Positions 23,621-52,640 of a stretch of DNA of 64,000 bases are shown here, piece after piece (the stretch's first letter is position 1; the number at the start of each line of letters is the position of its first letter). The stretch is from Pecten maximus (taxonomy: Eukaryota). The stretch spans positions 32,488,001 through 32,552,000 of the forward strand of contig NC_047015.1 of assembly GCF_902652985.1 (NCBI RefSeq), written 5' to 3'. Made by a program: the position numbers and the translations under genes. The notes under the pieces are model-generated. The model ran no database searches. It had not been told where the DNA came from and was given only the letters and a program-made list of their open reading frames with translations.

Positions 23621-24547
23621 GATACGTCAGACGAAATATAGTTGTAATACACTCTGACATTAAGGGGCCCCGTCCCCTTGAGTCGAACCAGCATGATTTG
23701 TATTAATTATTATTGTCCTCTCCCAATGATACTTCAGACGAAATTTGGTTGTTATCCACACATGCATTAAAGAGAAGTAGCGTTTAAAGAAAAAAGAAAA
23801 AAACCTAGCTAAGTTCCCCTTTGGGGCCGTCCCTCTGTCTCCAAAGGTCGAAACAGCTCATGTATATAATGTGACTTGTAAAGCAGTTTCAACAATTCTT
23901 TTAGACCCAGTGAGCACACATGCGCCTATATTTCCAAATGTGTGTTAAATTAAAATCCAGTTATGTCAATGAATGTATCCAAGGAAACAGAACAATTCTA
24001 TTTCCGAGAAAAAATCATTGTTTTCCAATCGCAAGTCCACATGCAAAACTTCCATGTATTATATGGATTGATGGTATTTTGGTACCGTGCTCTTCAATAA
24101 ATCCACGGATAAAAGAAATTAGGGATCAATTATTATAATGTTAAATAAGATTTGTAGCAAGACAAACATTTCTACAAACTGGTACTGGTTTTGTTAAATT
24201 CAGTAGCAATCTATTTTGTTTGGGCAGATGCAAATATTTTATCTGCAAGTTGAAAGCCCATGTACCTGGGTAAACTAGCGCATTCCGCGATGTTTGTTAG
24301 TTGTCCTGTGTTGTAGTCGCCCAGTTTTGATAACTCGGCAAAGATAGGATCATAATTTGGGCAATTTGTATGCTCAGTCATAAACTTCAAGGGGATATAT
24401 GTAAATGGCGTACCCATAATGCACGTCCGTTACATCTTATACATACATCTGTAAAATTAATCGTGAAACATTCTTTATTGCCGACTGTTGAAAAAACGTC
24501 TAAAATTTTCCATACGGAGTTGAACAATCCGCAACCGCTTTGTTGTT

Positions 24548-24878
24548 TACAACACATTATCTGCACTTTGTTATTTATAAAACAACAACATATTATCTGC
24601 ACTTTGTTATTTATAAAACAACAACATATTATCTGCACTTTGTTATTTACAAAACAACACATTATCTGCACTTTGTTATGTACAGAACAACAACACATTA
24701 TCTGCACTTTGTTATTTACTAAACAACACATTATCTGCACTTTGTTATTTACAAAACAACACATTATATGCTCTTTGTTATTTACAAAACAACAACACAT
24801 TATCTGCACTTTGTTATTTACAAAACAACAACACATTATCTGTACTTTGTTATTTACATCACAGTATCTGCACTTTGG
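24548..24878. repeat. 33/36-bp minisatellite, about 9-10 copies
   Basis: Unit CATTATCTGCACTTTGTTATTTACAAAACAACA, with or without one ACA. Confidence 0.93.
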
Positions 24879-25118
24879 TTGTGACAATTGTTATCCTTAA
24901 CACGCAATCATTTTAAACGTTCCTTAAACATTTTGTAAATAGTCAGTTGGGATAAACCACATCTGTCGATCACCTTTTCCAAAGCATGTATCCTTATATT
25001 ATCATCCATATCAGGAAGATGAGACTTGAGCGGTGTTCACTGTAAACGATGTTATCTATTCCACCAATTGATCCACTTCGATAAATGTCCGATTTGATCA
25101 CTGATGTATTCAAGTGAG

Positions 25119-26304
25119 TTACTTAGCTTGGAATCTGTAATGGTCGTACAACAGACTGCCTATCGTAAATTCAGAATGAAGAATTGTCCCAGGCTGATAT
25201 CCACTTGCTGCACAACATAACGCTATAGGAAGGAAGTGTTCTGGGGTTTTATGTGCACTTGAGAATGACTTCTCTTCAGAGCAAGCCAGGAACTTGTCCC
25301 TTCCGTTCGTTAGGGCTATAGTTGGGGTTGGACACCAGGTCGTGAAGCCACTCTCTGAATGGTTCGGCCCAAGGTAGATTTGACTCGCACATCCCCGAGT
25401 GTGAAGCGAACCCACTACCTATCACCAGAATGTTTTCCTTACTCAAGTCCGACAACGCCTCACCAATCTTCAGGTGTTCCCCCATGTCATAACTCTTCAA
25501 CAGTGATACTTCAACCACTAAAACACGAGGAAAACGAAATTATTGTGATAAAAATGTGCATTCTTTATTCATTTCTTTCGACTTTTTTGATAATTTTTTT
25601 TTGTATTTGTATCTAATATTTACTTAATTGTTACCTAGGAAGTAGTTTTGTTATTGAAAGAGCAAATATAATGTAGTTGTAGTTTTACACACAAACCACA
25701 ATACATGGCGAATTTACAATAGTTATTTTTTCATCTAACCTACCTCATGTTGAAATATGGATACAAACCAACGCTTCTTGTAATTCGTAATTGTGTGATT
25801 TGCATATCAAATAAAATAAATATCATCAAATGTACATGGTCTTAATTTCGAATCCACCTTACCTGGGATATTGGCTTCAGGGAACACCAGCTTTAAAGGG
25901 ATGAATACTCCGTGATCTAGTCCTCGTTTGTTGTCTTCATTACACGGAATTCCTCTTGCTTCAAGTAGATCTTTGACCCTCTTTGCCACATCGGGTGCCC
26001 CGGTTACAGGCCATCGTACCTCGTACGTCTCGGGAGGCCATTGGAAATCACCATAGTCATAAACCAAAGAATAATTTTCAGGTGATGTCACCGAGCATAT
26101 CTCTTCTTCCCAATGGGCACTAAAAACTACAAGAGCCTTTGGGGTGGTTATGCTGTGGTCCGTTACGAAGCTCTTCAAAACGTTTGCCGCAGTGGAGTCT
26201 TTATCCAAACCTTTTACCCTTGGCTCTGTTGTGGCATCCATGTAAAATGAAGGCCCAGCACCATGGGAAAGGAATATAGCGGGTTGGCATTCACTCACAG
26301 ACAT
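25119..26304 (-). CDS. DODA: LigB-family / 4,5-DOPA extradiol dioxygenase-like, copy 1 (two coding exons; 1-bp frameshift as assembled)
   Basis: Exons 26304-25863 and 25517-25119 with a phase-1 GT-AG intron. Motifs FLSHGAGP, SAHW, YDYG.F..PPETY, RGLDHGVFIPL, IGSGFASH and EHFLP. One extra G in GGG at 25298-25300 splits exon 2 into ORFs 25276-25518 and 25119-25415; 279 aa if corrected. The symbol denotes the family, not proven activity. Confidence 0.88.
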
Positions 26305-27705
26305 TTTCGCTTCACCCAGGGACTAAAGAAGATATGAAATATGTTTTAGCAAATGAGACCCATACTATCAACACTCATTGACCAAACTAGTATTCAAAAT
26401 CATTTTCAAAATGACAGAAAATGTATACTTGGAAACCTGCTATGGCGAATAACGACCGGAAAATTTCACGACAAACAGGCACAATTACAAATATGACACC
26501 GGCTACTAACGCTTAGATATATTCAAGCTAATACTGACAAAAACAATTTGGGTTTTCGTCAGCTAGATGCCACGTTGTGTATTTCAGTTCATTTTATTTC
26601 CCCACTCATTTGAAAAAAAAGTAACAAATCTGACATAGCTTTATGATATATGATTTGACATTTTATGGGCGCAGGCAAAACAGATGTCTCTATATCTATA
26701 TCGAAATTATGGGAATACAGTTTATCATTTAATGCATTTGTCGTAAAAAGTGCTATTATCTTATTTGATATTTCCTGTCTTTAAACATTATATCTCCCAC
26801 TAAGAACGTCAATGTGTACGATCAGTTAAATGTAATTGAACACAGAGTCGTTTTTTATCATAAGTTTCAGTTGCATCAGAGAATCCTAGCCTTCCCTATA
26901 ATACACACACCATGATGAGGACAGGTTTTTGACAAACTACCTGGGGGTACGTGTAGATCTATTACGAAATCAGCTTGACGCAATAAAATGTTTTCATTTG
27001 TAATGGACTATACAGCAGTCTGTATAGTAGTTATAAATATGTAGACACGCAATAAGGAGGACGTGTTTACTCTACATGTGTGTTATTAAGAGGGAAGCGG
27101 CATACCTCTTAAACATAACATACAATGCACTTCTAATCCACAATTATTTGGATAAACACAAACTATCATAACTGATATACAATACAACGTTTAGAATACT
27201 AGATTTATTCCACCTTTTTAATATGATAATAATCTGACGTGAAGTAGTGAGCATTACTAGCTCCTAAAGTCACAGGCTTACTTGTAACAATAGTATCCTT
27301 TTGAGAGACGACCCTTTTAGTCGCCTCATTTAAAATACAACTACTTTCTTATCTCCTGAAAAGTGGTTTGTTAATGTTGTAATAACGAATAGCGGACTAC
27401 GTGACGCCTGTTTTAGGTATTCCCTAACAAAGATCTTACTGACAACAGGAGACAACAACCACCTGTTTATATTGCCTCATTATAAAAAGGTGTTCCATTA
27501 TCTAATCAAGATATCAGATACGTGCTTTGTAGGGATGATCGTTTTGAAGATTCGAATGGGTTAATGAATATATCGAATTTGCTTTTAAAACAATAGTAAG
27601 TAATAGATCATTCACGAAATCAATTCTGAATGAGTCCATGTGGGTTATTTAGCATTGGTACCGTTAATGCTCTATCGGTTACTAAAGCAAAGGGGAGTGT
27701 GCTTA

Positions 27706-30700
27706 GATTTCTGGGCTTAGTTACAGTCACTAGAACTGATGAGAGTGATTTCTGTGTATAGTTACAGTCACTAGAACTGATGAGAGTGATTTCTGTGTAT
27801 AGTTACAGTCACTAGAACTGATGAGAGTGATTTCTGTGTATAGTTACAGTCACTAGAACTGATAAGAGTGATTTCTGTGTATAGTTACAGTCACTAGAAC
27901 TGATGAGAGTGATTTCTGTGTATAGTTACAGTCACAAGAACTGATGAGAGTGATTTCTGTGTATAGGTACAGTCACTAGAACTGATGAGAGTGATTTATG
28001 TGTATAGTTACAATCACTAGAACTGATGAGAGTGATTTCTGTGTATAGTTACAGTCACTAGAACTGATGAGAGTGATTTCTGTGTATAGTTACAGTCACT
28101 AGAACTGATGAGACTGATTTCTGTGTATAGTTACAGTCACTAGAACTGATGAGAGTGAGTTCTGTGTATAGTTACAGTCCCTAGAACTAAGGAGAATGAT
28201 TTCTGTGTATAGTTACAGTCACTAGAACTGATGGGAGTGAGTTCTGTGTATAGTTACAGTCACTATAACTGATGAGAGTGAGTTCAGTGTATAGTTATAG
28301 TCACTATAACTGATGAGAATGATTTGTTTGTATAGTTACAGTCACTAGAACTGATGTGAGTGATTTCTGTGTATAGTTACAGTCACTAGAACTGATGAGA
28401 GTGATTTCTGTGTATAGTTACAGTCACTAGAACTGATGAGAGTGATTTCTGTGTATAGTTACAGTCACTATAACTGTTGAGACTGATTTCTGTGTATAGT
28501 TACAGTCACTATAACTGACGAGACTGATTTCTGTGCTTAGTTACAGTCACTAGAACTGATGAGTCGGATTTCTGTGTATAGTTACAGTCACTAGAACTGA
28601 TGAGAGTGATTTCTGTGCTTAGTTACAGTCACTAGAACTGATGAGTCGGATTTCTGTGTATAGGTACAGTCACTAGAACTGATGAGAGTGATTTATGTGT
28701 ATAGTTACAATCACTAGAACTGATGAGAGTGATTTCTGTGTATAGTTACACTCACTAGAACTGATGAGAGTGATTTCTGTGTATAGTTACAGTCACTAGA
28801 ACTGATGAGAGTGATTTCTGTGTATAGTTACAGTCACTAGAACTGATGGAAGTGATTTATGTGTATAGTTACAATCACTAGAACTGATGAGAGTGATTTC
28901 TGTGTATAGTTACAGTCACAAGAACTGATGAGAGTGATTTCTGGGTATAGTTACAGTCACTATAACTGACGAGACTGATTTCTGTGCTTAGTTACAGTCA
29001 CTAGAACTGATGGGAGCGATTGCTGTGTATAGTTACAGTCACTAGAAATGATGAGTCGGATTTCTGTGTATAGTTACAGTCACTATAACTGATGAGAGTG
29101 ATTTCTGTGTATAGTTGCAGTCACTTGAACTGATGAGTCGGATTTCTGTGTATAGTTACTGTCACAAGAACTGATGAGAGTGATTTCTGGGTATAGTTAC
29201 AGTCACTAGAACTGATGAGAGTGATTTCTGTGTATAGGTACAGTCACTAGAACTGATGAGAGTGATTTTTGTGTATAGTTACAGTCACTAGAACTGATGA
29301 GAGTGATTTCTGTGTATAGTTACAGTCACTAGAACTGATGAGACTGATTTCTGTGTATAGGTACAGTCACTATAACTGACGAGACTGATTTCTGTGTATA
29401 GTTACAGTCACTAGAACTGTTGAGACTGATTTCTGTGTATAGTTACAGTCACTAGAACTGTTGAGACTGATTTCTGTGTATAGTTACAGTCACTATAACT
29501 GACGATACTGATTTCTGTGCTTAGTTACAGTCACTAGAACTGATGGGAGCGATTGCTGTGTATAGTTACAGTCACTAGAACTGATGAGTCGGATTTCTGT
29601 GTATAGTTACAGTCACTATAACTGATGAGAATGATTTCTGTGTATAGTTACAGTCACTAGAACTGATGAGTCGGATTTCTGTGTATAGTTACAGTCACAA
29701 GAACTGATGAGAGTGATTTCTGGGTATAGTTACAGTCACTAGAACTGATGAGAGTGATTTCTGTGTATAGTTACAGTCACAAGAACTGATGAGAGTGATT
29801 TCTGGGTATAGTTACAGTCACTAGAACTGATGAGAGTGATTTCTGGGTATAGTTACAGTCACTAGAACTGATGAGTCGGATTTCTGTGTATAGGTACAGT
29901 CACTAGAACTGATGAGAGTGATTTATGTGTATAGTTACAATCACTAGAACTGATGAGAGTGATTTCTGTGTATAGTTACAGTCACTAGAACTGATGAGAG
30001 TGATTTCTGTGTATAGTTACAGTCACTAGAACTGATGAGACTGATTTCTGTGTATAGTTACAGTCACTAGAACTGATGAGAGTGATTTCTGTGTATAGTT
30101 ACAGTCCCTAGAACTAAGGAGAATGATTTCTGTGTATAGTTACAGTCACTAGAACTGATGGGAGTGAGTTCTGTGTATAGTTACAGTCACTAGAACTGAT
30201 GAGAGTGAGTTCTGTGTATAGTTACAGTCCCTAGAACTAAGGAGAATGATTTCTGTGTATAGTTACAGTCACTAGAACTGATGGGAGTGAGTTCTGTGTA
30301 TAGTTACAGTCACTAGAACTGATGAGAGTGAGTTCTGTGTATAGTTACAGTCCCTAGAACTAAGGAGAATGATTTCTGTGTATAGTTACAGTCACTAGAA
30401 CTGATGGGAGTGAGTTCTGTGTATAGTTACAGTCACTAGAACTGATGAGAGTGAGTTCTGTGTATAGTTACAGTCCCTAGAACTAAGGAGAATGATTTCT
30501 GTGTATAGTTACAGTCACTAGAACTGATGGGAGTGAGTTCTGTGTATAGTTACAGTCACTAGAACTGATGAGACTGATTTCTGTGTATAGTTACAGTCAC
30601 TAGAACTGATGAGAGTGAGTTCTGTGTATAGTTACAGTCACTAGAACTGATGAGACTGATTTCTGTGTATAGTTACAGTCACTAGAACTGATGAGAGTGA

Positions 30701-32308
30701 GTTCTGTGTATAGTTACAGTCCCTAGAACTAAGGAGAATGATTTCTGTGTATAGTTACAGTCACTAGAACTGATGGGAGTGAGTTCTGTGTATAGTTACA
30801 GTCACTATAACTGATGAGAGTGAGTTCAGTGTATAGTTATAGTCACTATAACTGATGAGAATGATTTGTTTGTATAGTTACAGTCACTCGAACTGATGTG
30901 ACTGATTTCTGTGTATAGTTACAGTCACTAGAACTGATGAGAGTGATTTCTGTGTAAATTAACAGTCACTAGAACTAATGAGAGTGATTTCTGTGTATAG
31001 TTACAGTCACTAGAACTGATGAGAGTGATTTCTGTGTATAGTTACAGTCACTAGAACTAATGAGACTGATTTTTGTGTATAGTTACAGTCACTAGAACTG
31101 ATGAGAGTGATTTCTGTGTATAGTTACAGTCACTATAACTGACGAGACTGATTTCTGTGTATAGTTACAGTCACTAGAACTGTTGAGACTGATTTCTGTG
31201 TATAGTTACAGTCACTAGAACTGTTGAGACTGATTTCTGTGTATAGTTACAGTCACTATAACTGACGAGACTGATTTCTGTGCTTAGTTACAGTCACTAG
31301 AACTGATGAGTCGGATTTCTGTGTATAGTTACAGTCACTAGAACTGATGAGAGTGATTTCTGTGCTTAGTTACAGTCACTAGAACTGATGAGTCGGATTT
31401 CTGTGTATAGGTACAGTCACTAGAACTGATGAGAGTGATTTATGTGTATAGTTACAATCACTAGAACTGATGAGAGTGATTTCTGTGTATAGTTACAGTC
31501 ACTAGAACTGATGAGAGTGATTTCTGTGTATAGTTACAGTCACTATAACTGACGAGACTGATTTCTGTGCTTAGTTACAGTCACTAGAACTGATGAGTCG
31601 GATTTCTGTGTATAGTTACAGTCACTAGAACTGATGAGAGTGATTTCTGTGCTTAGTTACAGTCACTAGAACTGATGAGTCGGATTTCTGTGTATAGGTA
31701 CAGTCACTAGAACTGATGAGAGTGATTTATGTGTATAGTTACAATCACTAGAACTGATGAGAGTGATTTCTGTGTATAGTTACAGTCACTAGAACTGATG
31801 AGAGTGATTTCTGTGTATAGTTACACTCACTAGAACTGATGAGAGTGATTTCTGTGTATAGTTACACTCACTAGAACTGATGAGAGTGATTTCTGTGTAT
31901 AGTTACAGTCACTAGAACTGATGAGAGTGATTTCTGCGTATAGTTACAGTCACTAGAACTGATGAGAGTGATTTCTGTGTATAGTTACAGTCACTAGAAC
32001 TGATGGGAGTGATTTATGTGTATAGTTACAATCACTAGAACTGATGAGAGTGATTTCTGTGTATAGTTACAGTCACAAGAACTGATGAGAGTGATTTCTG
32101 GGTATAGTTACAGTCACTAGAACTGATGAGAGTGATTGCTGTGTATAGTTACAGTCACTAGAACTAATGAGACTAATTGCTGTGTATAGTTACAGTCACT
32201 AGAACTGATGAGTCGGATTTCTGTGTATAGTTACAGTCACTAGAACTGATGAGAGTGATTTCTGTGTATAGTTACAGTCACTAGAACTAATGAGACTGAT
32301 TTTTGTGT
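27706..32308. repeat. 41-bp satellite, about 112 copies, with higher-order structure
   Basis: Unit GTTACAGTCACTAGAACTGATGAGAGTGATTTCTGTGTATA. Confidence 0.98.
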
Positions 32309-32825
32309 TTTGTAGTGGACGACCATATAAAATATAGAACAATTAAATGCTTTTCGCTCCATTACATAGTGTAACGTATGTGTGTTACATATATAAATTG
32401 AATGTATCGGTGAGGCTTTGTCTAACCTGCTTAATCTTTAGGTTTAGGATTACGTAACATTTCTTACTAGGGGAAACGGATAAACACTTCATTAGCATTT
32501 TATACTCAAGTTTATAACAATTAGTTTCGATTTAAATAGCAATCTTACTGTACCTGTGTTTAAAAGCTACATATAACGTGTTCCTATCGCATTGTCAACA
32601 TTTAAATACAGAGAAATACATCCACTTGATTTACAATGCTATTTATCCTTTATACGTCACCTAGTCACACTTGTCCTTAACATTAGTTACCTAGGAGGAT
32701 TCATTTCCCAGGTAAAACAGTACAATCATGTTTTAATACATCAGGGTTTCTATCAATTAGTACTACACCATTATAACAGAGGATAGTCGACATGCGTTTT
32801 TTTTCCTACTAAAACAACTTAAGAC

Positions 32826-32937
32826 TACTGACACGCTAACAAACCAGTACTCATAACTCAAATAATCATATACTCTACTGACAGGCTAACAAACCAGTAC
32901 TCATAACTCAAAATAATCATATAATACTCTACTGACA
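32826..32937. repeat. Short tandem duplication (~50 bp, 2 copies)
   Basis: CTACTGACA.GCTAACAAACCAGTACTCATAACTCAAA(A)TAATCATATA repeated. Confidence 0.8.
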
Positions 32938-33646
32938 TTTTCGTTACAATATTAAGACCTCGTTACCTGTTTCTGGATAATAAACCTGAGTTGATCCCGT
33001 TCACTTCCACAGTTCTGAGGTTAACACTCAGAAAAGCCTCGACTTCTACGAAACAAGTGTTGCTTAAACATTGGCTGCGTCCACATTTCTTTTCCTTGCA
33101 TACGTAAATTGTATATATATTACAGTGCCTTTTAACGTAGGAGAAGCACTCAACCGTGTTGTCATTTTAGTTGATAAGTATTTGAGTGAAATGGTCTGGC
33201 TTCAGTAAACACAAGCTGTCAAGTATGCCTTAGCAGTTTTGTGTATAAACATCTACAAACTCTTCTATAAAACTTCATAATACATTATGTATGTGTGTAT
33301 ACATGCGACTGAGCCTTAGATTAGCGACGTGCTATACACTACTTACACGTGGTGTCACGTGGTATTGTTTAATCATACATGACGAAATACCTGACAAGAC
33401 ATGGCAGTCACTAACCAGGTGTTAATTAGTAATTATCATACGTAACAGTAATAACCTGAATTTCTTCAGTATGGCTTAAGGAGGCTATCATACATTACAT
33501 GTACCAAATATACACAACACTTTAAATGAATTATAATGAAGGAAAATCTTTCACATGCAAAAGAATATACTTTCTTAATCCTATAAACAAATAGTACCGT
33601 GAAATAGCAATTGAAATGGCCCATATACCATCAGGACAATGTGAAA

Positions 33647-36113
33647 AGTGTGAAGCCTAGACGGACACTAATGGACCATGTCATCAACATAATGTAAAAA
33701 GTATGAAGCCTATATACATACTAATGGACCATGTCATCAACATAATGTAAAGGTATGAAGCCTACATACATACTAATGGACCATATCATCATCATAATGT
33801 AAAAGTATGAAGCCTACATACATACTAATGGACCATATCATCAACATAATGTAAAAAGTATGAAGCCTACATACATACTAATGGACCATGTCATCAACAT
33901 AATGTAAAAAGTATGAAGCCTATATACATACTAATGGACCATATCATCAACATAATGTAAAAAGTATGAAGCCTACATACATACTAATGGACCATGTCAT
34001 CAACATAATGTAAAAAGTATGAAGCCTACATACATACTAATGTACCATGTCATCAACATAATGTAAAAAGTATGAAGTCTAGACACATACTAATGGACCA
34101 TGTCATCAACATAATGTAAAAGTATGAAGTCTAGACACATACTAATCGACCATGTCATCAACATAATGTAAAAAGTATGAAGTCTACATACATACTAATG
34201 GACCATGTCATCAACATAATGTAAAAGTATGAAGCCTACATACATACTAATGGATCATATCATCAACATAATGTAAAAGTATGAAGCCTCGACACATACT
34301 AATGGACCATGTCATCAACATAATGTAAAAAGTATGAAGTCTACACACATACTAATGGACCATGTCATCAACATAATGTAACAAGTATGAAGTCTAGACA
34401 CAAACTAATGGACCATGTCATCAACATAATGTAAAAAGTATGAAGTCTAGACACATACTCATGGACCATGTCATCAACATAATGTAAAAAGTATGAAGTC
34501 TAGACACAAACTAATGGACCATGTCATCAACATAATGTAAAAAGTATGAAGCCTACATACATACTAATGGACCATGTCATTAACATAATGTAAAAGTATG
34601 AAGCCTACATACATACTAATGGACCATATCATCAACATAATGTAAAAAGTATGAAGCCTACATACATACTAATGGATCATGGCATCAACATAATATAAAA
34701 AGTATGAAGCCTACATACATACTAATGGACCATGTCGTCAATATAATGTAAAAGTATGAAGCCTACATACATACTAATGGACCATGTCATCAACATAATG
34801 TAAAAAGTATGAAGCCTACATACATACTCATGTACCATGTCATCAACATAATGTAAAAAGTATGAAGCCTACATACATACTAATGGACCATGTCATCAAC
34901 ATAATGTAAAAGTATGAAGCCTACAGTTGTATATACATACTAATGGACCATGTCATCAACATAATGTAAAAAGTATGAAGCCTACATACACACTAATGAA
35001 CCATGGCATCAACATAATATAAAAAGTATGAAGCCTACATACATACTAATGGACCATGTCATCAACATAATGTAAAAGTATGAAGCCTACATACATACTA
35101 ATGGACCATATCATCAACATAATGTAAAAGTATGAAGCATACATACATACTAATGGACCATGTCATCAACATGATGTAAAAAGTATGAAGTCTACATAAA
35201 TACTAATGGACCATGTCATCAACATAATGTAAAAGTATGAAGCCTACAGTTGTATATACATACTAACGGACCATGTCATCAACATAATGTAAAAAGTATG
35301 AAGCATACATACATACTAATGGACCATGTCATCAACATGATGTAAAAAGTATGAAGTCTACAGTTGTATATACATACTAATGGACCATGTCATCAACATA
35401 ATGTAAAAAGTATGAAGCCTACATACATACTAATGGACCATGTCATCAACATAATGTAAAAAGTATGAAGCCTACATACATACTAACGGACCATGTCATC
35501 AACATAATGTAAAAGTATGAAGCCTACATACATACTAATGGACCATGTCATCAACATAATGTAAAAAGTATGAAGCCTACATACATACTAATGGACCATG
35601 TCATCAACATAATGTAAAAGTATGAAGCCTACATACATACTAATGGACCATATCATCATCATAATGTTAAAGTATGAAGCCTACAGTTGTATATACATAC
35701 TAATGGACCATGTCATCAACATAATGTTAAAGTATGAAGCCTACATACACACTAATGAACCATGGCATCAACATAATATAAAAAGTATGAAGCCTACATA
35801 CATACTAACGGACCATGTCATCAACATAATGTAAAAAGTATGAAGTCTACATACATACTAACGGACCATGTCATCAACATAATGTAAAAGTATGAAGCCT
35901 ACATACATACTAATGGACAATGTCATCAACATAATGTAAAAAGTATGAAGTCTACATACATACTAATCGACCATGTCATCAACATAATGTAAAAAGTATG
36001 AACCCTACATACTTACTAATGGGCCATATCATCAAAAAATGTAAAACGTATGAAGGCTAGATACATTATATTGGACAATTTCGTCAATAAAATGCAAAAC
36101 GTATGAAGCCTAG
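33647..36113. repeat. 52-53-bp satellite, about 46 copies
   Basis: Unit TATGAAGCCTACATACATACTAATGGACCATGTCATCAACATAATGTAAAA(A)G. Some units carry an 8-bp GTTGTATA insert. Confidence 0.98.
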
Positions 36114-36964
36114 ACTATGTTATATTTAAACTACAACCACTTTATCAATAACCATTAGTTGTATGAAGGGTCTTCCCTATTACGCTGTTAATAATAATTT
36201 CTTTATTTTACAAATTATACGATAACACTTTCCCAAAGTATAAGGGATGTCCAGGTGTGTAATTTGTCAATGGGATTAAGTGAGCATGCTATTTGTTAGA
36301 ATACATACCGGATACTAAAAGAAAAGTACATACATACTGTCTGTGAGAGAGTTTTTTTTATCAAACATGCCTGATTAATATCTAATTTGAAGAGAAACCA
36401 GGATGTGGGTGAAGCTCCATGATTTTATGACACCAAATACATCATTTATGAGCAATCTTATAAAATTAACCGCAATTTACACGTATGGCATTACATACAT
36501 TAACCTTCTTTACTTTATCCCTTAATAATGATTTACTTTTAATATAATACAAAACCTACATCAGCGATGTCCCTATTACGTAGACGTAGTGTTGCTATTA
36601 TTAGCGGGGTTAACGTCCACAATAACGACGTTTCGGCGGGCGACGTGTTGAGTCAAACGGACGAGTGACGTAATGAGTAACTGAAGATTAATATCACGTG
36701 AATAATGAGAATATCAAGTAAGTGTGTTATCGCCGCCATGCTATTTTTATTTTATGTTATTGTATTTTTTAGTGAAATAGTAAACTGAAGTAGAAACTTA
36801 AGTTTGATGATCGAAGTAACCAGTGTTTCCTTCCGTAATGAAATACTTTGTGTCGTTCTTATGACATGATCTCTAGCTATGCAAATTAAGTGACGGCATG
36901 ATTTCACGCCGTGGTGGACCGACTGTCTTAAGGAATTGAGAAGGTTTCCTAGTGTATTCCAGTT

Positions 36965-37900
36965 GATTTCGGTGTCTTCCAGATTTTATATATCAGTAAT
37001 TGGATGAACTCCAATTGGCTCAAGCTATATCAGGAAAGGACGGAACTAATAGTCTTTTCCCATAAGTGTCAGCACACTAAAGGTCTCCAGCTAAAGGTTA
37101 GTGCCCAAACAATTGAGGCAGTCCAAGTTGTGAGGAACCTCGGGGTACACTTTGATAACTGTCCGAACATGGCGAAACAGGTAAACGCTGTCCTGTTATT
37201 ACCAAATCAGAAACAGCGGGTGTATTTGACAGTTCATGACCACAGTTGCATGCAAGATATTGGTACATTCGTTTGGTACTTCTTGATTAGGCTATGGCAA
37301 TGCTTTGCTCTTTGTTGTAACTGATGCACTGATTAGCCGCCGGGAGAAGGTCCAGAACACTGCAGCATGCCTCAGGTTTCCCACACTCAAAAGAGGGAGC
37401 ACATCACACCAGCGCTTTATTCATTGCATTGGTTACCTGTGTATTTCAGGTCACAGTACAAGATTTTGATGTATATATACAAGGCAATAAATGTAACCAT
37501 TTCGGAGTATTTACAGGAACTTGCCATTCTCTACCAGCCGTCATGATCACTGTACATACGATCAGAGACAGAATCCTTGTTATGCGTTGCTGACTCTCGT
37601 ACTGAGGTTATGGTAACCGGTGCTTTGGAAAGGAAGCGGCCACTTTGTGGAACAGCTTATCAGTTGTCACCAAGAAGACCAAAACCCTGACCAAACTCAA
37701 GGGGATTAAAACTAACTTTTTGTGTGTGCTTTTTAGAGTCTCTTGCAGACGTCCATAATGTCGATAAAGGTTATATATGTTCTTTGCATTGTGTAACACT
37801 TGAAATATTGTGTACTATTATATCATTATATCAATGTGAAGCGCATTTAACAAATTTGTTAGTGCACTTTATAAATAATGTATATTATCACTATTATCAT
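36965..37900 (+). mobile_element. L2/CR1-group LINE, 5'-truncated, degenerate RT C-terminus and 3' tail
   Basis: WMNSNWLKL..ERTELIVF, VRNLGVHFD, KVQNTAA, REHITPALYSLHWLPV and ATLWNSL read across stops and frameshifts. Ends in ATAAATAA..(TAT/CAT)n. Confidence 0.85.
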
Positions 37901-39797
37901 ACAGCTGTTTTAACCTTCTAGGACTCGTCAAGGATTTTAAGTACCTAAGATATTGATACATAGGAGTCAACGGAAGAAACTCAACACAGGTCAACAAAAT
38001 ATCAGAATCTGGATTGGGGAAGTGAAACAGTGCAGTAAAATTACATATTTTTTATATTGGATAGAAAAGATAGAAACTTCTCAAAAGAAGAAAGGGAAGG
38101 AGTCCCCGTTTGATAATGAAGATGGTACTTTACAGAAGCCAAAGCCAAATTTCTGAGATTTAAAGATAGATAAAAAGATATTTTGAGTTATTCAAAACTC
38201 CACACGCTGTTTCCGCTGGTGTACATTTTGTAAGTTTTACTTAGAACGTTACTTAGACAAAGAAGGCACGTTTTTATTTTTTATCAAAAACTACTATTTT
38301 AAAATATTGTAATACAAAACATGACCGGCTGGTATTTCGTTTATCGAGGAAAAAACCGAATGTTATAAAAGTCGAATTCATTCCCTTGATATCAAGGAAG
38401 ACAAACTCGTTATGTACACAAGGAATATAGAAGGGGTTCACAGGCGATGTTAGGTTTAATTGAAACCACGAATAAACACAAGTGTTTGGTTTTCATTTTG
38501 TATTCCAAACTATTGATTTTTTTTCAATAGATACGCCTAATATATATTCAACCTACCACTCTGAATGTTTTGTCCATTCAGTATACTCATATTTTGATAT
38601 TACAAACCCACAAGAGGACACGTAATTTTTTTATTAGATCACTTCTAATTAGTTTTCTCGAAATCCAAATTTCATCTACTTAATTGAATACCAGCAACAT
38701 TTTTATAGCTAAATGCATTCACGTCTAAGATATGCGCAATCGGAAAAAAAGCTTATTGATGTTTACAAATTGTGACGATAGTCACACGCCGTGTATCTTG
38801 ACTAACGTCATACATATTTTTCTCGTTGGATTTCATGTCGAATGCACATATAAATATGTATTTATATCGACAATCTACCCTAATCATTATCCAACTTTAG
38901 AACGCAATTATACAAGATGACGCACATAAAGTGCCGTACCTATCAAAGCATTAGATAGTCATCTTCACATTTATATAATGTGGTGTGCTATAAATGTACA
39001 ATCAACATGCTAACATAAATGGACGTGTCTGATTTTATGTTCTATCTCCATAAACACGAAGAGATTATTACGAATAGGTTTTATGTGTATGTATATCGTG
39101 CTTCAATCGAGTCGCTATTATATCGAATGTATATATCAAACGGATTTATAAATGGGATCTAATTGAAACAGGTTAAAAACCCTTTTTATCGATCTACAAT
39201 ATCTCCGTCAAATATTTCAATATGTACATATACATTGCATATCAGGCAAAATATATAACATCAGACAAATTGTAATATCTAGCATCAGGCAAAGTATATT
39301 AATACTTCCATGAATTTGCTTTGTCAAGAGACAGTTAGACAAAAGATACTGTCTCCCTTCTGAAATACATTGAAATGAGACATGAGCTGCGTAACAGTTT
39401 AACCATCACCGCCTCAAATACTGTCACTAGAACGCTTTACTTCTATGACGATATCAACGGAGCGCTCATTTACAACAGATTTGTAAAAAGCAGAAACAAA
39501 CTGTCAACAGGTCGAGGTTTGCTCTTTCGCTCCTGTTTCAGAGCAGGATATGGAGGATTCGAAAAAAACACGCAAAGAATAGTAAACACACAGCGTGAAG
39601 GCTTTCTACCGTTCCTTGGGGAGGAAAACACATTTGAAGTGTTTTCCAAAGATGTTTTTTAAGGAAAATTTAAGAAACTGTTTTGCTTCGGTAACATTAT
39701 ACTTTATTGCTAATTAAATGAATATTCAGACACAAGATTGGTGTGAAGAGTTTTAATTAGGATATTGTTATCATTATGACTTTCGGGATAATAAAAC

Positions 39798-39907
39798 AAA
39801 TATTACATTCTTTAGTATGTGACAGTGGATATTGTCAACCCTCGGAATCCCATTGTCACTCTCGGGTTGACAATATCCACTGTCACATGCTAAAGAATGT
39901 AATATTT
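39798..39907. repeat. Long palindrome (44-bp arms, one mismatch, 22-nt loop)
   Basis: AAATATTACATTCTTTAG(T/C)ATGTGACAGTGGATATTGTCAACCC and its reverse complement. Confidence 0.9.
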
Positions 39908-41117
39908 ATATAATATATAACAATAGACAGCGTATAATATATAACAAACCTCATAGTAGTAGTAGTTCTCTTTCTGTATTTGGCAAAGTAATGAATATAC
40001 TTTTTTGTACATGTGTATATCGTGTATCTCTTTATGTTAATAACATCCTTGTTTACAACAGACCATGGTTACATTACTATATTTGTACTTATTGGGAGTC
40101 TCCATGCAGATCTAAATTTTGACCTTTATTCATGTTTACTTCCGTCGCCATTTATTTGAAACCTGTAGATTTGTCTTTTCAATCTTATTTGGAATGTTCT
40201 ATTTCCTTGCGTGAAGACTGATATGTTCTTTGCTCAGCAATGCATGCAATGAAATGATTAAATGTAAACCCCTTATGCGATGTCGTTAGATGTTCATGTA
40301 ACGTAGTGAGGATGGCCATATCTAGATTTTAATTAGACTGAATACCCATGCAAATACTTTAACATGAAATACCCTTCATATATGAGTCTTGAGGTGTTTT
40401 AACAAATAGTAAATTTCATGATCCTGGGTCTCTCGTTTCCCCCTTGGAAGGGGATAAACTTTCCTCTGTAGCTTATATAGGAAAATGACATTTTAATCAT
40501 CTTTTATTTAATTGCCAATTGAAATAATTCTGTTAGAATTTTCTGTATTGGATGGCAGACTGATGGTGTTCATAAATCGACCCTAACTGACGCCCAGGGA
40601 CTGGTTGGCAGAGTCAAAATGGATTTAATTGACTGAAGTTTAAAACAAAATCTTCTTGTCAAAACCCAGATATGATCAGATACTCTGCATAGATGAAAGA
40701 GTTTTAAGATGGTTTACCAAAACTGTGTAACATTCCTATTTTTTTTTTTTTTTTTTTTTTTAAATCAACGATGAATCAGGAAACTGTAGAGGCCCATATG
40801 TCTTTCGTTACTTTATTTCATTATTTTAAAGTTATGTTGTGATCTAAGAGGACACGATGAAATGGTGACAATTCCTAAAGTATACGGTTGATCTTGTATG
40901 GATGGCTTTACTTCTTCTGTATAGGTAATATGTTACTATCAACTAGATATGTAATTCTTAATTTCAATAAAGTAAGGCCAATGACCGAAGTTCTATTAAC
41001 CTGGACGGAACAACACTTAATTACATATTTAGATAGTTAGAATGTACATTGATGTATTTCCTTATCCACCCACTAATAATGTGATGTTATACTTAAGCAT
41101 GCCTTGTGAATAAGGAA

Positions 41118-41203
41118 ACGGATGTTGCTGTAGGGCCTTTTATCACATTTTATATGACGTATACGGATGTTGCTGTAGGGCCTTTTATCACATTTTTTAT
41201 GAC
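41118..41203. repeat. 45-bp period direct duplication
   Basis: ACGGATGTTGCTGTAGGGCCTTTTATCACATTTT(A/T)TATGACG twice. Confidence 0.85.
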
Positions 41204-42291
41204 GCGTGGTATTGTTGATTCTTGCGTGAAAAACAAATCACAAATATATCATACACAAACACCGATATTATTCCAGTCAGAACACTTATAATATGATATT
41301 GAACCAGTTATATCTGGGCTCTATTAGCTAAAACATATTTTATTCAATAACATTTCATATCTTGATTTTTTATCGGAACTGGCACACTATGATTTTTTCT
41401 CGTATATCTGATAACAATCAAAACGGCTCGGTAAAATCACTGGAATGTGATATATATACAGATTGTTTACTTTATGATATATCCATGTGTTATATGCTTG
41501 TGTAAATGCCCATTAACGGACAGGGCATTATATACAAACAACATCAGTACACATTTATAATATTAGTGTGTTTTAACTAAACAAAAATATTAGCCTAGCA
41601 TGTAGAGATCTCTGTTGCCATTTATAAGCAATCACAAACCGTGCTTCACATAAAAATTGGATATTTTTTGAGCTTATAATTATGTTGGTACCGGCCACAG
41701 ATTACTTTCATTGTCCAACTGACACTCTAATGGAATAAGCACATTTGGCCTTTTTACAAGTCTCTCACATTCTGTACTCCGTGAAGCCTTATATTGGTCT
41801 ATCGAATGTGCCCTTTGATCCCTAGTGTTCTTAGGAGTAAGTAATAACTTGATAAAAATAAACGACTTTCTCCGGTCGGATTTGGGTTCTCCCATTTAAG
41901 GTTTGAATATGCTCTTATACTCTCATATTATAAATCTAAACAGTCCCCTCTGTCCAAAGGTCGTTATCTGGTTTGGTTATATGATACTGTTCCGATCAAA
42001 TATTTACAGATATGATTAACGTCACCTTTAAAGCGTCGGAGCGTACTGTATATTCCATAAAGACGTATTCCGCTAATCGTCTTATGCTAAAGTAAAGAAT
42101 TAATATTATATAATGCGCAAAATCAATCATGTTCCGGACATGTATAATCACTCAACAATACAAACAACATAATGTTTTATTAAACAGCAATGTACACACT
42201 CCTAATCCTATTACAAAGTCCATACGATTATGTGTATATATCAGCACATTTCGATACGGTTTCATGTATATCATACATTGTAACCAATATC

Positions 42292-42852
42292 TAAGGATTG
42301 AATCTTGATTTGGTCGATTTCATGGGGTCATGAATTGAATTGCTTTTGAGACAAATTTAATGAACTGCAAAGCAAGTTCATTTTGAATTTGTCTCAAGAG
42401 CAACTCAATTCATGACCCCATGAAATCGACCAAATCAAGGTTCAATCCTTATATTTCAATTGTTTTTTTTTTTTTCGAATAAAAAGTCGGTCTAGATATT
42501 AATGTCTCGAAGCTTATGCAAGTCCAAATGGGGAAAAGCCCGAGGAGTCTAGTCGGTCGAGTAAAATAGTCCGCAATATTAGGATTAAAAACAGCATTAT
42601 TTTGTCAAAATAGAAGTATTTAGCATCTCTGGTCTTTTATAAAATACAAGAATACATTATAAATTTGATAATTTTAATAATTATTCCATGTTTATAACAA
42701 CAATGTGGAAATAGTGAAATCGTTCCGCGGAAGGATTTTAACCATGTATTCATACGCACTGATCAGTGTTAATCTGGTCAAATTCATGAGCAAATGAAAC
42801 AGATTAAGTTTGATAGTTTCATTGAGTCCAACTTGAGTAGAAATTGGAATAT
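42292..42852. mobile_element. Non-autonomous hairpin element (160-bp palindrome plus body bounded by short inverted repeat)
   Basis: Arms of ~75 bp at 42292-42451. ATATTTCAATT (42451) pairs with AATTGGAATAT (42842). The family (Crypton-like) is an inference. Confidence 0.6.
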
Positions 42853-43180
42853 ATGGCAAATGAAATAAAATGTTTGAGTAATGAATAGCTTTTTAAAGCT
42901 TAAAATGAAATTTCAATGGGCTTTGCATCATATGAGAAATGATAGTCTTAATTATTAACCAAAATAGCCAAAATCAGATACAATATTGAATAATGTTTAA
43001 ACTTTAACACCAGTCATGATTTTATGGTTTGTCTCTGCATCCATTTTGATAAAGTAGGGAGGGGGTTTATGGAGTAAATAATGTTATCAAAGTTAGATTA
43101 TTTTGAAGAAAGCAATATGACAATGAATTAGGAATGCTATTAAATGGCATGAATAGTGTATGATAACACAAGCTTTAGAC

Positions 43181-45187
43181 CTATTTTGCTGCTGGAAATC
43201 TGTATTGATCATTCAACAAACATCCTACAGAAAATTCCGAAAAAAGAATTTCTGCTGCCTGATATCCACTTGCTGCACAACATATGGCGATGGGGATGAA
43301 ATGTTCACTGGTAGGATGTGCCTTCGAAAATGTCTTCACTTTTTTATATTCCAGAAACTTAGTTTTTCTCTCACTAGCGCTGTATTTTGAGTTAGACAAC
43401 ACATTATGAATCCATTCCTTGAACGGCTCTGCCCACATTAACCCCTCGGGAGACAATCCCCCGTGTGTAGCAAATCCGCTTCCTATCACCAGTACATTTT
43501 CCTTACATAGGTCCGACAATGCCTCTCCAATCTTCAGGTGTTCACTCATGTCCAGGCTATTAAGGAGCGACACTTGTATCACTAGTAAAAGAAATCAATA
43601 AAAAAAATTGTCATTTGACATTTCAAATCTTCATTAATAATATTTTAAGCATTTTTCGCTTGTATAATTTTTCGGGAAATTGATAACGTTATCTTTCTTT
43701 AAAATATATGCTACCCGTTAATTAACACATTCGATTTTGTGTGGATGATTTAGCATTGAGTTAATACAAAATCGCCAGATCATCAGAGTGCTCTCCCATG
43801 TCTAAACATTCACTCAACTGAAACAAATTCACTGTTAGAACCAGGAGGTTCATAAGAACAACATACCGACATAATAACAAAACAATTTGGTTCATTTAAG
43901 ACTTATTAAAGTGACGTTTTAAATAATTAAAAAAAGAAAATTTGTATTCAAATATGAAGTGGTCCTGAAACATTGTATATATGAGGAAATGGAAAATAAG
44001 TCGATATATCTCTTATATATGTTCAAAAGATGGATTGATTCCAGTTTTTGCTCGATACTGTTAAGCTGTCTTGGGTACGGTTGATAGTGTTTTAGGCACA
44101 GCGTATGGTAGACTTACTTAACATTACATCTATGTAAGAATGGAGTAAATGATAGCAGCAAGTGGTAATTGGACTTGGGAGTTTATGCAGAATAAAAATA
44201 AGTAGTTTCCCCTATGTCACATATTATCATTCCAACAGTACATTGGGTTGTGTAGGGTCATTTTTCTCATACCAATGTTTGTTCCTCCAATCGCGTCCTT
44301 TCATGTATCTTCATACAAGATTTCTCAATAACTACTTTCATATAACAGTGACTTGAATTATAATTATTATTTTGATTAAAGACTTAGTAGGGGTAAAATC
44401 CAGTGATCGGATGATATTAGAGAACATATGAAATAACTTTTGTAACTCCTTGCCGCTTAGCCTCAGTTTGATGGTGAACCTGTGTCTTCACGCTAAACAG
44501 GTAGGTCGGCAAAAGTTAAGTTTGCTGCAATACTTTTGAAAAACACTGAGATGGTTAAATTAGTGACTACATAGATCCAGTTAAAATCCAGGGAACAAAA
44601 TCAAACAGAATTTGTTTTCGTTTTCTCAATTAAATCAAACAATATAAGTAAATGTTGTTCAAAAATGATATTATTGCGTCCCCATTTTCTTCAAAACTGT
44701 GTTTTAACATTGATTACTTAGTAAATGGATATATTACCCTCGATAACGTACCTGGAATATCAGCCGCCGGGAACACTAGTTTTAAGGGTACGAACACACC
44801 ATGATCCAATCCCCGCTTCTTCTCCTCCTTACACTCGATTCCTCCTGCCTCTAGTAATTCCTTGACCCTCCTGGCAACATCCAGATCCCCAGTTACTGGC
44901 CACTCAAGTGTGTAGGTCTCTGGTGGGAACCCGCCATAGTCGTATAACAGGGAGTGCTTGTCATTTGTGTTGATACAACAGGTCTCTTCCTGCCAATGTG
45001 CACTCAACACAACAAGGGCTCTGGGAGGTTTGATATGATTGTCAGACACAAAGCTTTTCAAAACTCTTGCTGCTTTGGAATTTTTGTCTAAACCTTTGAA
45101 CATCGGTGCCTGTTCGGCATCCATATAAAACGAAGGACCAGCCCCATGAGACAGGAATATTATGGGCTGGATCGAATTTGCAGTCAT
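43181..45187 (-). CDS. DODA: LigB-family / 4,5-DOPA extradiol dioxygenase-like, copy 2 (intact, 278 aa)
   Basis: Exons 45187-44752 and 43581-43181 with the same phase-1 intron as copy 1; splice acceptor 4 nt upstream of the ATG. Motifs FLSHGAGP, SAHW, YDYGGFPPETY, RGLDHGVFVPL, PVIQVSL, IGSGFATH and AHPTSEHFIP. The symbol denotes the family, not proven activity. Confidence 0.92.
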
Positions 45188-48100
45188 TTGCCTGTAGGAA
45201 AATAAGAATGTAGCTATCAAACCTTTTTAAAGATTATATTAAATCAAATGTTTCTTTTTTGCACATTTACATATATGTCTCGTTCTAATTTTATTAACAT
45301 GTATTTTATATATTATTAGACGATAGCTTATTGGCAGATAACTTGTATATGTATTGTTCAAAAATGCCTGATATGCTGAAACCCTTGAGAAATTGTGTGT
45401 ACTATAAATTATTGGGCTGTGACAGTTTTAGGGAGAAATAAATACTTTATTTGATATATATAATGTTATTATCAGAAGATAAGGATGTTTTCACGATACC
45501 TCTTGCATGTGCTTTACTAGAGAATAACACATTTTTATATATTGATTTAATAAATAATCTATAAAATTGAATTAATTAGTATTTATAAGTATTTATAAAG
45601 TATTCTGTCGGAAATTATGAAAAGGACTATGATATTAACTTGATTAAATTATTACTGCCAAGTATCAAATCTTATTCAATACATCTTCGAAAACTCCCTT
45701 AATGAGATAGGGTTACACAATCTTTTTACCTTTTAATGTACTGAAAGTTATTCTTTCTCTTTATGTTCATTGTTTTACTTGTACTCTTTATTTGTCACGT
45801 TTATTCGAATTATTTACTTATGTATTTGTTGAATGTACATGAATGTAACATGATAATTAATACTGTATGTACACTGTATATATAATGCATAAACGATTAA
45901 TAATACATATTGATTAATATGTTATTACTGAAGCTAAATAATGCATGTATGTGTGAATTAACTAAAAATTGCCTTTGTACGAATGCATACGATACTTGAT
46001 AACGGATGTAAGGTATGTGTGTAGTTGTGTCTGAATTCAGTAATATAAGCAAATTGCGAATCGGTCTCTTCTTGGATACACAGTATACGTGTATATATTA
46101 TTATGCTTATCTTAAAAAATCTTTCAAGAAGAAAATAATGATAATAATAAATCTTCGAATATTGACAATTATGAATCCTTCAAAACAACTATTTTTTCAT
46201 AATAGGATTAGATACACCCACCGGTTTAATGTATATACATCCCAGTGTGATATGCGTACGGGGCAACATTTGTGACTGATGAACACAAGTGACTGATGAT
46301 CGCATGACCATTTATCATAATATCATATTGGCCTCCGCTGTAAATATACATTGAAGTACTTTGTTTGATTGACATTTTCCATCCGAGTGCTGATCTTCCT
46401 CCCATTCATATTACCATTTACATTTAATTTACATATTACTTCCGTGCTGTAGAGCTCAGTTTCATTATAAACGTGTGTATCAAATAAAAACCAGAAAAAA
46501 ATATGTGTGGTGATTTATTGGCTCACATTCTTTATGTTGATTTTGCTAATTGAAAAATTCCAATTAATAATTACAATTCGTAGAATTATATGTATGAAAT
46601 ATATCAGCAAAGGTGAGCGGAAGAAAAATTAGTCAGCCAAAAATGACTATATATAAATATAGTGAAGCACATTTAAGCGCTTAAAATACTACAGGTATTT
46701 TGATTAACACAATCTTAACAAATATATTAACAAACCTGAACTTTTTTGTATCTAAAATAAATAAGCTTGTAAATAATATTTTATTATTATAAAGTAGACG
46801 TTGCTATTTACATGTATTGTTAGTGTGCTTTGAGGTGGTATTGCTACCATCGGCATTTATCGTCAAGTGATGGATTGGATAATTGGATAAATAAAAATGA
46901 TATACCATAAAAAGCTAAAGAGTAAACATGATAAGACAACTTAGAACTGTAAAAGATTAGATGGTGACTGTGAGTGTAAGAAGCGACAACTCTGGGTAGA
47001 GCTTGAATAAACAACACCATGCGTGCTGTGAATTATCTCTCTTTGTTTACAAATATATATCCTATTTACTTCCGGTTTTTTTCTAATAACCCAACGAGTG
47101 TTTCCCTTTGATATCAATGCATGTATAAATCCTGATGAACCCTTCCTTGCAAATATATCACCAACAATAACTCTCAATTTTCACTACTTATACTACCAAT
47201 GGTCTTCGATATAGAATCTCTCATATCTGGTCGTGTTTACAAATGTCAATCGGCCTGTTAGAATATCAATTGTCTCATAAATAACTTCATAAATCGATTA
47301 TATCATATCTTACATTTAACGCTGTTTTGATTACCTTTTAAACATCCACAGTTTCCTGCTCATCAACGTTCTGTGCACACTTTGATAAAGCCTGCAAAGA
47401 GGGATCACTTGCGTATGGTTTATGTTCTAAATATTCAACTCTGCTAGCTGGCAAGATGCCAGGTCATAGACATAATGCAATGTTTAACAGGTATACCTAC
47501 ACTCCAATTGATTCGTTACTCGAATAGATACTTCTGATAAACACGGACAACTAGGGTGTTGTTTAGGATTGAATCTTAATATAATTTAATAAAAAAAAAA
47601 CATAGCTTTCAAAATAAGTACCTGATAGCAAAACTGAATTTCTATTTTTACTATTGTAACGCTGTATGTTCCCGCTCCTTTGGAATAACGTGCCGTTAAA
47701 ACAAAAAGAAAAAACATGTTCATTTGTAACTATATTTTACTGCACTTTTGGAAGTTTAGGATAAGTTACACGAACAATATTTTAATACCAGTTTGCTATG
47801 AATTAGTTGTTCCACAGACAGGTACAGTAAATAGTCTCAAACAATAACAACAAAGAACATCGACATATAAACATATCAACTGTAAATTGTAACCCTAATA
47901 ACGAGGACAAAATATGAAAACTATCTCCTGGATCTAGCCAATAGATAAATGTAAACCAATAAGTTACCCACTGATGAAAATTTATTATATGGATACTCTA
48001 AAAATACCAGACAAGAATTCCACTAACATCTGAAATATAACTCTATAGCACTAAACAGAAACATTATATCTACGACAAAGACCACCGACAATAAGATATA

Positions 48101-51642: not shown

Positions 51643-52640
51643 TTTACCAAAACCACAGGAGTAGTCAAGAAATACAAAAAGTATATATTTTTCACAACTG
51701 GCACCTTGCGTGCTGGGTTGTAAATAGCGTCTTAATTCAACCATCATCAGAACCCATCCTTATATCACGTGTTTGGAGAGGGAGTATTGATCGGGTAATG
51801 AAATAATAATCTCCTTGGGTGAAAAATCCACCAATATTTACCGTAAAAGTTAGTTTATTGAACAAGTAATTAGATACCATGTAAAAGTGTCTGACCAATA
51901 TTCTAATGACGTATGTACACTTAACGTCCCCAGAACAGTAATGATCGGCAATAATGGACAATATACATGATAAGTATATATCGGTATGAAATACATAGGG
52001 GACAACAATCAGACATCAAACACCATATGATAATAATAGAGAAACGTAATAGCCAATTACTGGTAAATCACCTAACGCTTTGCTATCACATTAAAGTGGC
52101 TATTTACATAGTGTCTTTTGTGTTTCTTTGGTAAATAATAACACATTAAAGCCTATGTCCAGCGTCCTTATTGTCTACTTTCATCATCTAATGACCATGT
52201 CAATTATCTCTAGTTTCTATGTACATTGTTCATTACAAATCCTTTGTATGCTAAGTACTTGGAAGTCAGTGCCAGAACATGTACTTAAACAAGGCAATAT
52301 GAAAACGAAAGCAGTACTGTTTAGTTATTCTGTTGCCAAAATATGAAAGTTAACGAGATCATGTGGTAAACTAAAAGAGACGGTTTACAACTAAGCAGTA
52401 TGATAAATGTGCTTACTTCAATTTCAAAAGAGGGTGTTGTTGATGAAGCAGAAGACCATTACCCAGTGCTTCTTATGTTGTCTCCATGCAAATATATTTC
52501 ATGTTCATATTTTTTCATCGCTTTATTGAATTCGATGTAGAATTGCGGGTTTTTATTCATATTACTGGGCATAATATCGTCAGAAAAAAATTCAACGAAA
52601 CGTCAATAGGAATGAAGATGGACATGAAATAAATAAAAGT

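Follow-up and report, generated by a model that had tools for sequence, protein, structure and literature searches.

The formation of betalains or of betalamic acid has been reported from E. coli, Gluconacetobacter, Anabaena, the fungus Neolecta and a tardigrade (PMC13263728). The E. coli enzyme, YgiD, produces betalamic acid from L-3,4-dihydroxyphenylalanine (L-DOPA) in vitro and holds its metal through His22, His57 and His234 (PMC13263728). The tardigrade enzyme, DODA1 of Hypsibius henanensis (Li et al. 2024, as cited in these sources), is linked to betalain synthesis and radical scavenging, and is described as a horizontal transfer from bacteria that occurs in parachelan tardigrades only (PMC13263728, PMC13389832). 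Spider mites carry catechol-cleaving enzymes for which the detoxification of dietary phenolics has been proposed, and these are secreted, of fungal origin and expanded to 17 genes (PMC9167512). Here we describe two DODA/YgiD-type genes that lie in tandem on the minus strand of a 64,000-nucleotide stretch of the genome of the king scallop, Pecten maximus (contig NC_047015.1, positions 32,488,001 to 32,552,000), which we call the window and in whose numbering all coordinates are given. DOPA is in heavy use among molluscs, for byssus, periostracum and melanin, and we know of no catechol ring-opening enzyme that has been studied in these animals and of no betalain-type pigment found in them.

Gene structures and predicted active site

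Given the metal site, the full-length fold and the purifying conservation evident in both paralogues, we consider it probable that the tandem genes encode active Fe(II) extradiol dioxygenases of the DODA/YgiD type that act on a catechol. The products of these two intact paralogues, which represent a mollusc-wide gene, are predicted to be cytosolic, non-haem class III enzymes in which Fe(II) would be bound through His14, His64 and His239 and the catechol ring would be opened next to its hydroxyls. The parts of the two genes, termed copy 1 and copy 2, are listed below, where X6 and X1 denote sequencing runs of RNA type and DNA type, respectively, and P0001 is the RefSeq protein model of copy 2.

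47335-47391, minus strand: copy 2 5' exon, with donor GT at 47334-47333; upstream limit uncertain; from the RefSeq model
44752-45191, minus strand: copy 2 first core exon, with acceptor AG at 45193-45192 and ATG at 45187; 100% identity to P0001
43582-44751, minus strand: copy 2 phase-1 intron, 1170 nt, GT..AG; P0001 is continuous across the junction
43181-43581, minus strand: copy 2 last coding exon, encoding His185 and His239; stop TAG at 43183-43181
32967-33039, minus strand: copy 1 non-coding 5' exon, at least 73 nt, with donor GT at 32966-32965; from RNA contig X6
26323-32966, minus strand: copy 1 5' intron, 6644 nt, holding a 41-bp satellite
25863-26322, minus strand: copy 1 first core exon, with ATG at 26304, encoding 147 residues plus one base; lies under the spliced RNA contig
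25518-25862, minus strand: copy 1 phase-1 intron, 345 nt, GT..AG; RNA contig X6, record 18
25119-25517, minus strand: copy 1 last coding exon, one open frame in the reads; stop at 25121-25119
25298-25302, minus strand: surplus base in the reference assembly; RNA contig X6 and DNA contig X1

A preliminary description of this stretch, made from its letters alone, had proposed two same-strand LigB/DODA genes that keep the family histidines, share one phase-1 intron and have 5' acceptors, and had cautioned that homologues might already be annotated. Each of these points holds. Both minus-strand genes have a Pfam LigB match and all of the family motifs, the phase-1 intron interrupts the identical codon in the two copies, an exon is joined to each of the 5' acceptors, and RefSeq already names both genes ‘4,5-DOPA dioxygenase extradiol-like’ (Pecten maximus).

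In copy 2, P0001 begins at an ATG at 47363 that is in frame within the 5' exon. Its residues 1-9 correspond to 47363-47337, after which the exon ends with AG/GTAATC (the slash marks the exon boundary), and the model then joins 47335 to the acceptor exon at 45191. This RefSeq extension adds 11 residues that are non-conserved and missing from the orthologues; from the conserved ATG at 45187, the protein measures 278 amino acids. The first core exon, which a protein search started from it matched to P0001, encodes residues 1-145 plus one base, carries His14, His64 and His129, and is followed by GTACGT (donor GT at 44751-44750). Copy 1 has its own 5' exon, 6.6 kb upstream of the core gene, which is evident from a 73-nt loose end of RNA contig X6 that reaches past the copy 1 acceptor and maps uniquely to 32969-32998; the exon end at 32967 reads CAG/GTAACG. 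The first core exon of this copy is followed by GTAAGG (donor GT at 25862-25861), and its 3' untranslated region (UTR) extends to at least 24993. The corrected copy 1 protein has 279 amino acids and is 66% identical to that of copy 2.

Family scans were made exon by exon, with P0001 and a second protein, P0007, standing in for the full-length proteins. All exon pieces that were large enough matched Pfam LigB (PF02900) above the gathering score of 26.3 bits, namely the first core exon of copy 2 (63 bits, E 3e-17), its last exon (31.7 bits, E 1.1e-7) and the first core exon of copy 1 (61.5 bits, E 8.7e-17). Precomputed PF02900 matches are also on record for P0001 and for P0008, the RefSeq model of copy 1. 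Both copies contain the motifs SHG, SAHW, LDHG, GSGFA(T/S)H and (S/P)EHF, and the five family histidines (14, 64, 129, 185 and 239 in the 278-residue numbering) are invariant in 13 mollusc sequences. When the Ylistrum orthologue of copy 1 is aligned with YgiD, its SAHW and EH histidines fall on His57 and His234 of the bacterial enzyme, and the SHG histidine occupies the expected N-terminal position of the metal triad.

Only four matches were found among solved structures in the PDB. Three are plant 4,5-DOPA dioxygenases (8in2, 29ky and 9j2l; E about 1e-47 to 1e-35), of which 8in2 is matched at E 2.7e-47 over residues 38-287, and the fourth is E. coli YgiD (2pw6; E 8.7e-22 to 1e-25). A structure model from the Atlas has a predicted template modelling (pTM) score of 0.91 and a template modelling (TM) score of 0.87 to a DODA-type cluster.

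Transcription and the reading frame of copy 1

Contigs of four sequencing runs were mapped over the stretch that contains copy 1 (24600-28400). An RNA contig of run X6, with a depth of 430, joins 25863 to 25517 exactly and thereby skips 345 nt whose ends read CT..AC on the plus strand, or GT..AG on the gene strand, and the RNA depth within this intron is 10-38 versus 430 for the spliced contig. Copy 1 is transcribed and spliced as predicted. Run X19 yielded no contig over copy 1, although this does not demonstrate absence. For the stretch that contains copy 2 (43100-45400), where exons make up a share of about 0.4, RNA-type runs from at least six studies contain 0.26-0.37 of the sampled words and DNA runs contain 0.80-0.91. 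The RNA signal of copy 2 is thus exon-sized, and the evidence for its splicing is indirect, coming from the RefSeq model and from this word share.

As assembled, copy 1 carries a +1 frameshift at 25298-25302 with a stop seven codons later, and it is because of this frameshift that the RefSeq model P0008 has only 227 amino acids and lacks the third metal ligand. Taken at face value, the extra base in the reference and the short model would make copy 1 a pseudogene cut off by the frameshift. However, the two contigs that span the site, one of RNA and one of DNA, each omit one base, so that the frame is restored and the affected codon specifies Lys or Arg. The contig from RNA-type run X6 is 986 nt long and identical to the reference save for the base omitted at 25298, and the contig from DNA run X1 represents another haplotype with eight other differences and omits a base at 25301. 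The reference therefore looks like two alleles merged into a surplus base. Also contrary to a pseudogene, the frame downstream is free of stops and shares 51 of 59 residues (86%) with the Ylistrum orthologue, and the copy 1 transcript is abundant and spliced. The frameshift is an assembly artefact and the gene is intact; its RefSeq model has been shortened by a one-base error and should encompass 279 amino acids. We regard the pseudogene as very improbable and reject it, given the frame restored in RNA and DNA contigs and the spliced transcript.

Just past the copy 1 stop, at 24600-25107, the word depth of run X6 rises to 600-1000 and exceeds the 430 seen over the exons. This signal could come from a long 3' UTR, from repeated sequence or from a separate transcript. 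Two overlapping open reading frames (ORFs) on opposite strands are located at 24370-24900, and neither has any Pfam match.

Distribution, age and origin of the genes

Homologues were collected as the best 120 to 150 matches. Both paralogues were found in each of the scallop genera Ylistrum, Mizuhopecten and Argopecten, and further homologues were found in other bivalves (Tegillarca, Mya, Dreissena, Mytilus, Pinctada, Saccostrea and Solemya), in Octopus and in the gastropods Gigantopelta and Littorina. The gene family spans bivalves, gastropods and cephalopods. Among the matches listed, no animals other than molluscs are named, and a six-frame search of the 918-Mb Pecten maximus assembly, to which the window contig belongs, uncovered the exons of these two genes and no further copies. 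The scallop sequences split into two sub-clades, and Pecten, Ylistrum, Mizuhopecten and Argopecten are represented in both; judging by this pattern, the duplication is older than the split of the four genera and is confined to scallops.

The phase-1 intron is likewise old, as judged from a set of exon-1 fragment proteins encoded by genomic contigs with 42-71% identity. In 33 of these 38 fragments, the homology ends right after ‘...(I/V)P’ and is followed by Gly and a short unrelated tail, which is what results when a phase-1 intron starting G/GT is read through.

Some annotated mollusc proteins depart from the common pattern at or near this junction. In a protein of Tegillarca granosa (P0012), six extra residues (VQRILT) stand precisely where the phase-1 intron lies, probably owing to a mis-set acceptor in the annotation. 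Two RefSeq models of Mizuhopecten yessoensis, P0003 (checked residue by residue) and P0004, combine a copy-2-type first half with a second half identical to that of the copy-1-type protein P0015. They reflect either two first exons with one common last exon or a read-through annotation that joins the tandem genes.

A metagenome scan with P0001 alone recovered no relative, and a scan with the mollusc alignment (A1) recovered 80 uninterrupted full-length loci of 34-41% identity on long, bacterial-looking contigs, which are uninformative about introns. A maximum-likelihood tree was built from 91 rows (IQ-TREE, LG+C20+F+G4 by posterior mean site frequencies). Molluscs form a single clade (100/98), the sister of which (100/98) comprises five proteins from transcript-like contigs, including P0121. 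One branch, supported at 100/91, divides the tips into two sets: all 14 named bacteria fall in the set of 25, and every mollusc falls in the set of 66, along with all six of the named eukaryotes (Pyxidicula, Chlorochromonas, a heterolobosean, Cyanophora, an MMETSP protist and a EukProt transcript). The molluscs are therefore located on the eukaryote side of this branch rather than nested with support inside a donor clade. The deeper backbone of the tree is short.

The preliminary description had suggested a microbial affinity and horizontal acquisition from the SHGAGP start of the proteins, followed by intron gain and duplication, and had proposed a phylogeny as the check. Most of this scenario is not supported. 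The SHG(A/G)GP start is shared by bacteria and four named protists, so it does not discriminate between origins, and we discard it as a sign of microbial ancestry. Judged by the E-values given above (2.7e-47 for 8in2 and 8.7e-22 for 2pw6), the plant DODA structures are closer relatives of the scallop protein than the E. coli enzyme is, and the tree groups molluscs with the six named eukaryotes and apart from all 14 named bacteria. A recent intron gain after transfer is contradicted by the age of the read-through intron. The duplication is real and confined to scallops.

An older event, in which a bacterium or protist donated the gene to the mollusc or a wider spiralian stem, with introns and later the scallop duplication following, has more in its favour, and we treat it as a genuine possibility that we nevertheless do not favour. 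Molluscs are the only named animals among the matches listed, bacterial homologues, at 40-52% identity, are about as near as distant molluscs, and constraining molluscs and their sister group to join the bacterial set lowers the log-likelihood (lnL) by 19.7 units, a placement that is not rejected (approximately unbiased (AU) test, p 0.15). Set against this are the 100/91 branch described above, the nature of the nearest sister group, which consists only of transcript-like contigs that may come from other animals, and the fact that the restriction to molluscs rests on the best 120 to 150 matches.

In contrast, recent transfer from a bacterium and bacterial contamination have only the abundance of the family in bacteria to commend them, and we assign them a negligible probability. 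Spliceosomal introns are removed in the RNA, orthologues occur in three mollusc classes, the tree speaks against both, and the flanks are composed of animal genes and satellites. Two intronless ORFs of the window, located at 50311-51747 (minus strand) and 54600-55865 (plus strand), each match Neur_chan_LBD (E about 1e-47) and Neur_chan_memb, which confirms the animal context. Together with the scallop contig and the spliced introns, they bear out the earlier statement that the genes sit among animal genes and are not contamination. On the strength of the spliced transcript and the mollusc-wide clade, both contamination and recent transfer are rejected.

The intervals around copy 1 are rich in repeats. 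A satellite at 27706-32308, with a 41-bp unit in 112 copies and 91% matches, occupies part of the first intron of copy 1, and another at 33638-36112, with a 53-bp unit in 46 copies, is located directly upstream of the copy 1 5' exon; these two large satellites between the genes account for a strong GC skew at 28-32 kb. Short ORFs at 37004-37546 (plus strand) resemble, by eye only, the reverse transcriptase tail of a decayed non-LTR (long terminal repeat) retrotransposon.

Candidate substrates and comparison with known enzymes

The likeliest substrate would be L-DOPA, or else a catecholamine or catecholic acid related to it, because, to our knowledge, every tested member of the DODA/YgiD subfamily accepts L-DOPA or a related catechol. 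The product of L-DOPA cleavage would be seco-DOPA, which could cyclise to betalamic acid or muscaflavin. By analogy with these enzymes, activity on L-DOPA in vitro is plausible, with the chances about evenly balanced. In the animal, a role in breaking down free DOPA or dietary catechols is no less likely than one in betalain formation.

Several observations weigh against our assignment of the two proteins as active catechol dioxygenases. Many LigB homologues act poorly on DOPA, and our literature search found no enzymology for any mollusc member of the family and no mollusc study. The support for splicing of copy 2 is indirect, from the RefSeq model and the word share. The bacterial equivalog model PRK10628 has a cut-off of 233 bits, and the scallop genes, scored by exon, remain far below it even when summed (copy 2 pieces, 60.6 and 26.3 bits; copy 1 piece, 62.3 bits). 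The plant betalain motif HP(S/A)(N/D)xTP is missing after the fourth histidine in both copies, where H-GGLSPE (copy 2) and H-SGMCES (copy 1) take the place of the HPSNGTP of 8in2, and the HNL sequence that bacteria and protists keep at this site is missing in the scallop as well. Given that this loop is replaced in molluscs and differs from species to species, substrate preference may have shifted.

The most far-reaching proposal is that molluscs retain an old eukaryote-type DOPA 4,5-dioxygenase that converts tyrosinase-made L-DOPA to compounds of the betalamic-acid or muscaflavin type in vivo, a scenario we hold to be unlikely. Equally doubtful, in our estimation, is its specific form in the scallop, where the enzymes, together with the tyrosinases that abound in molluscs, would give rise to yellow pigments of the betalamic-acid type or to radical scavengers. 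Membership of the subfamily and an intact active site are compatible with such a pathway. Given that betalamic acid is established to condense with amines without an enzyme, a single enzyme and a source of DOPA would be enough. DODA1 of Hypsibius henanensis offers an animal precedent (PMC13263728, PMC13389832). On the other side, the literature search found no betalain from a mollusc, and the high-activity motif of the plant enzymes is missing. Moreover, the DODA of Neolecta is active and yet its fruiting bodies have no detectable betalains (PMC13263728), and thus activity in vitro is no proof of pigment in vivo. If the proposal were true, molluscs would be the second animal group with betalain chemistry, based on a gene that is no recent bacterial import, and the finding would point to pigments or antioxidants of shell or tissue that have been overlooked as a class.

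Among described enzymes, the plant DODA proteins (8in2, 29ky and 9j2l) are the best solved relatives of the scallop protein. They belong to the same Pfam family, are of similar length and align at all five histidines, with the best match (E 2.7e-47) covering about 250 residues. However, identity is only about 35-40%, and the plant loop HP(S/L)(N/D)xTP contrasts with HGGLSPE and HSGMCES in the scallop. E. coli YgiD (2pw6) belongs to the same fold family and aligns its His57 and His234 with scallop histidines, but it is a weaker match and keeps HNL, and the scallop pieces score far under the PRK10628 cut-off. LigB of Arabidopsis (DIOXL) resembles the scallop proteins as a DODA-type enzyme that is encoded by a eukaryote and has no betalain role, and the source annotation of the Mya arenaria orthologue calls it ‘DIOXL-like’. 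The Arabidopsis enzyme cleaves caffealdehyde toward arabidopyrones, which illustrates that members of the family can use catechols other than DOPA.

Two animal systems also invite comparison. The intradiol dioxygenases of spider mites are likewise animal-encoded enzymes of catechol ring cleavage, but they constitute an unrelated family (PMC9167512). Tardigrade DODA1 shares with the scallop genes the status of an animal-encoded enzyme of the DOPA-dioxygenase type. The scallop genes differ in belonging to a mollusc-wide clade on the eukaryote side, whereas DODA1 is described as a bacterial transfer; no tardigrade sequence is among the named matches listed.

The RefSeq annotation of both genes was already in place, and a betalain-making animal DODA had been published for a tardigrade (PMC13263728, PMC13389832). 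New in the current study are the placement of a mollusc-wide clade on the eukaryote side, the old common intron, the scallop-specific duplication, the direct evidence of splicing and the correction of copy 1. A conserved and expressed DODA-type gene in three mollusc classes may represent a route of DOPA breakdown or a new animal pigment or antioxidant pathway. The mollusc tree also bears on how tardigrade DODA is read, in that not every animal DODA gene has to be a bacterial import.

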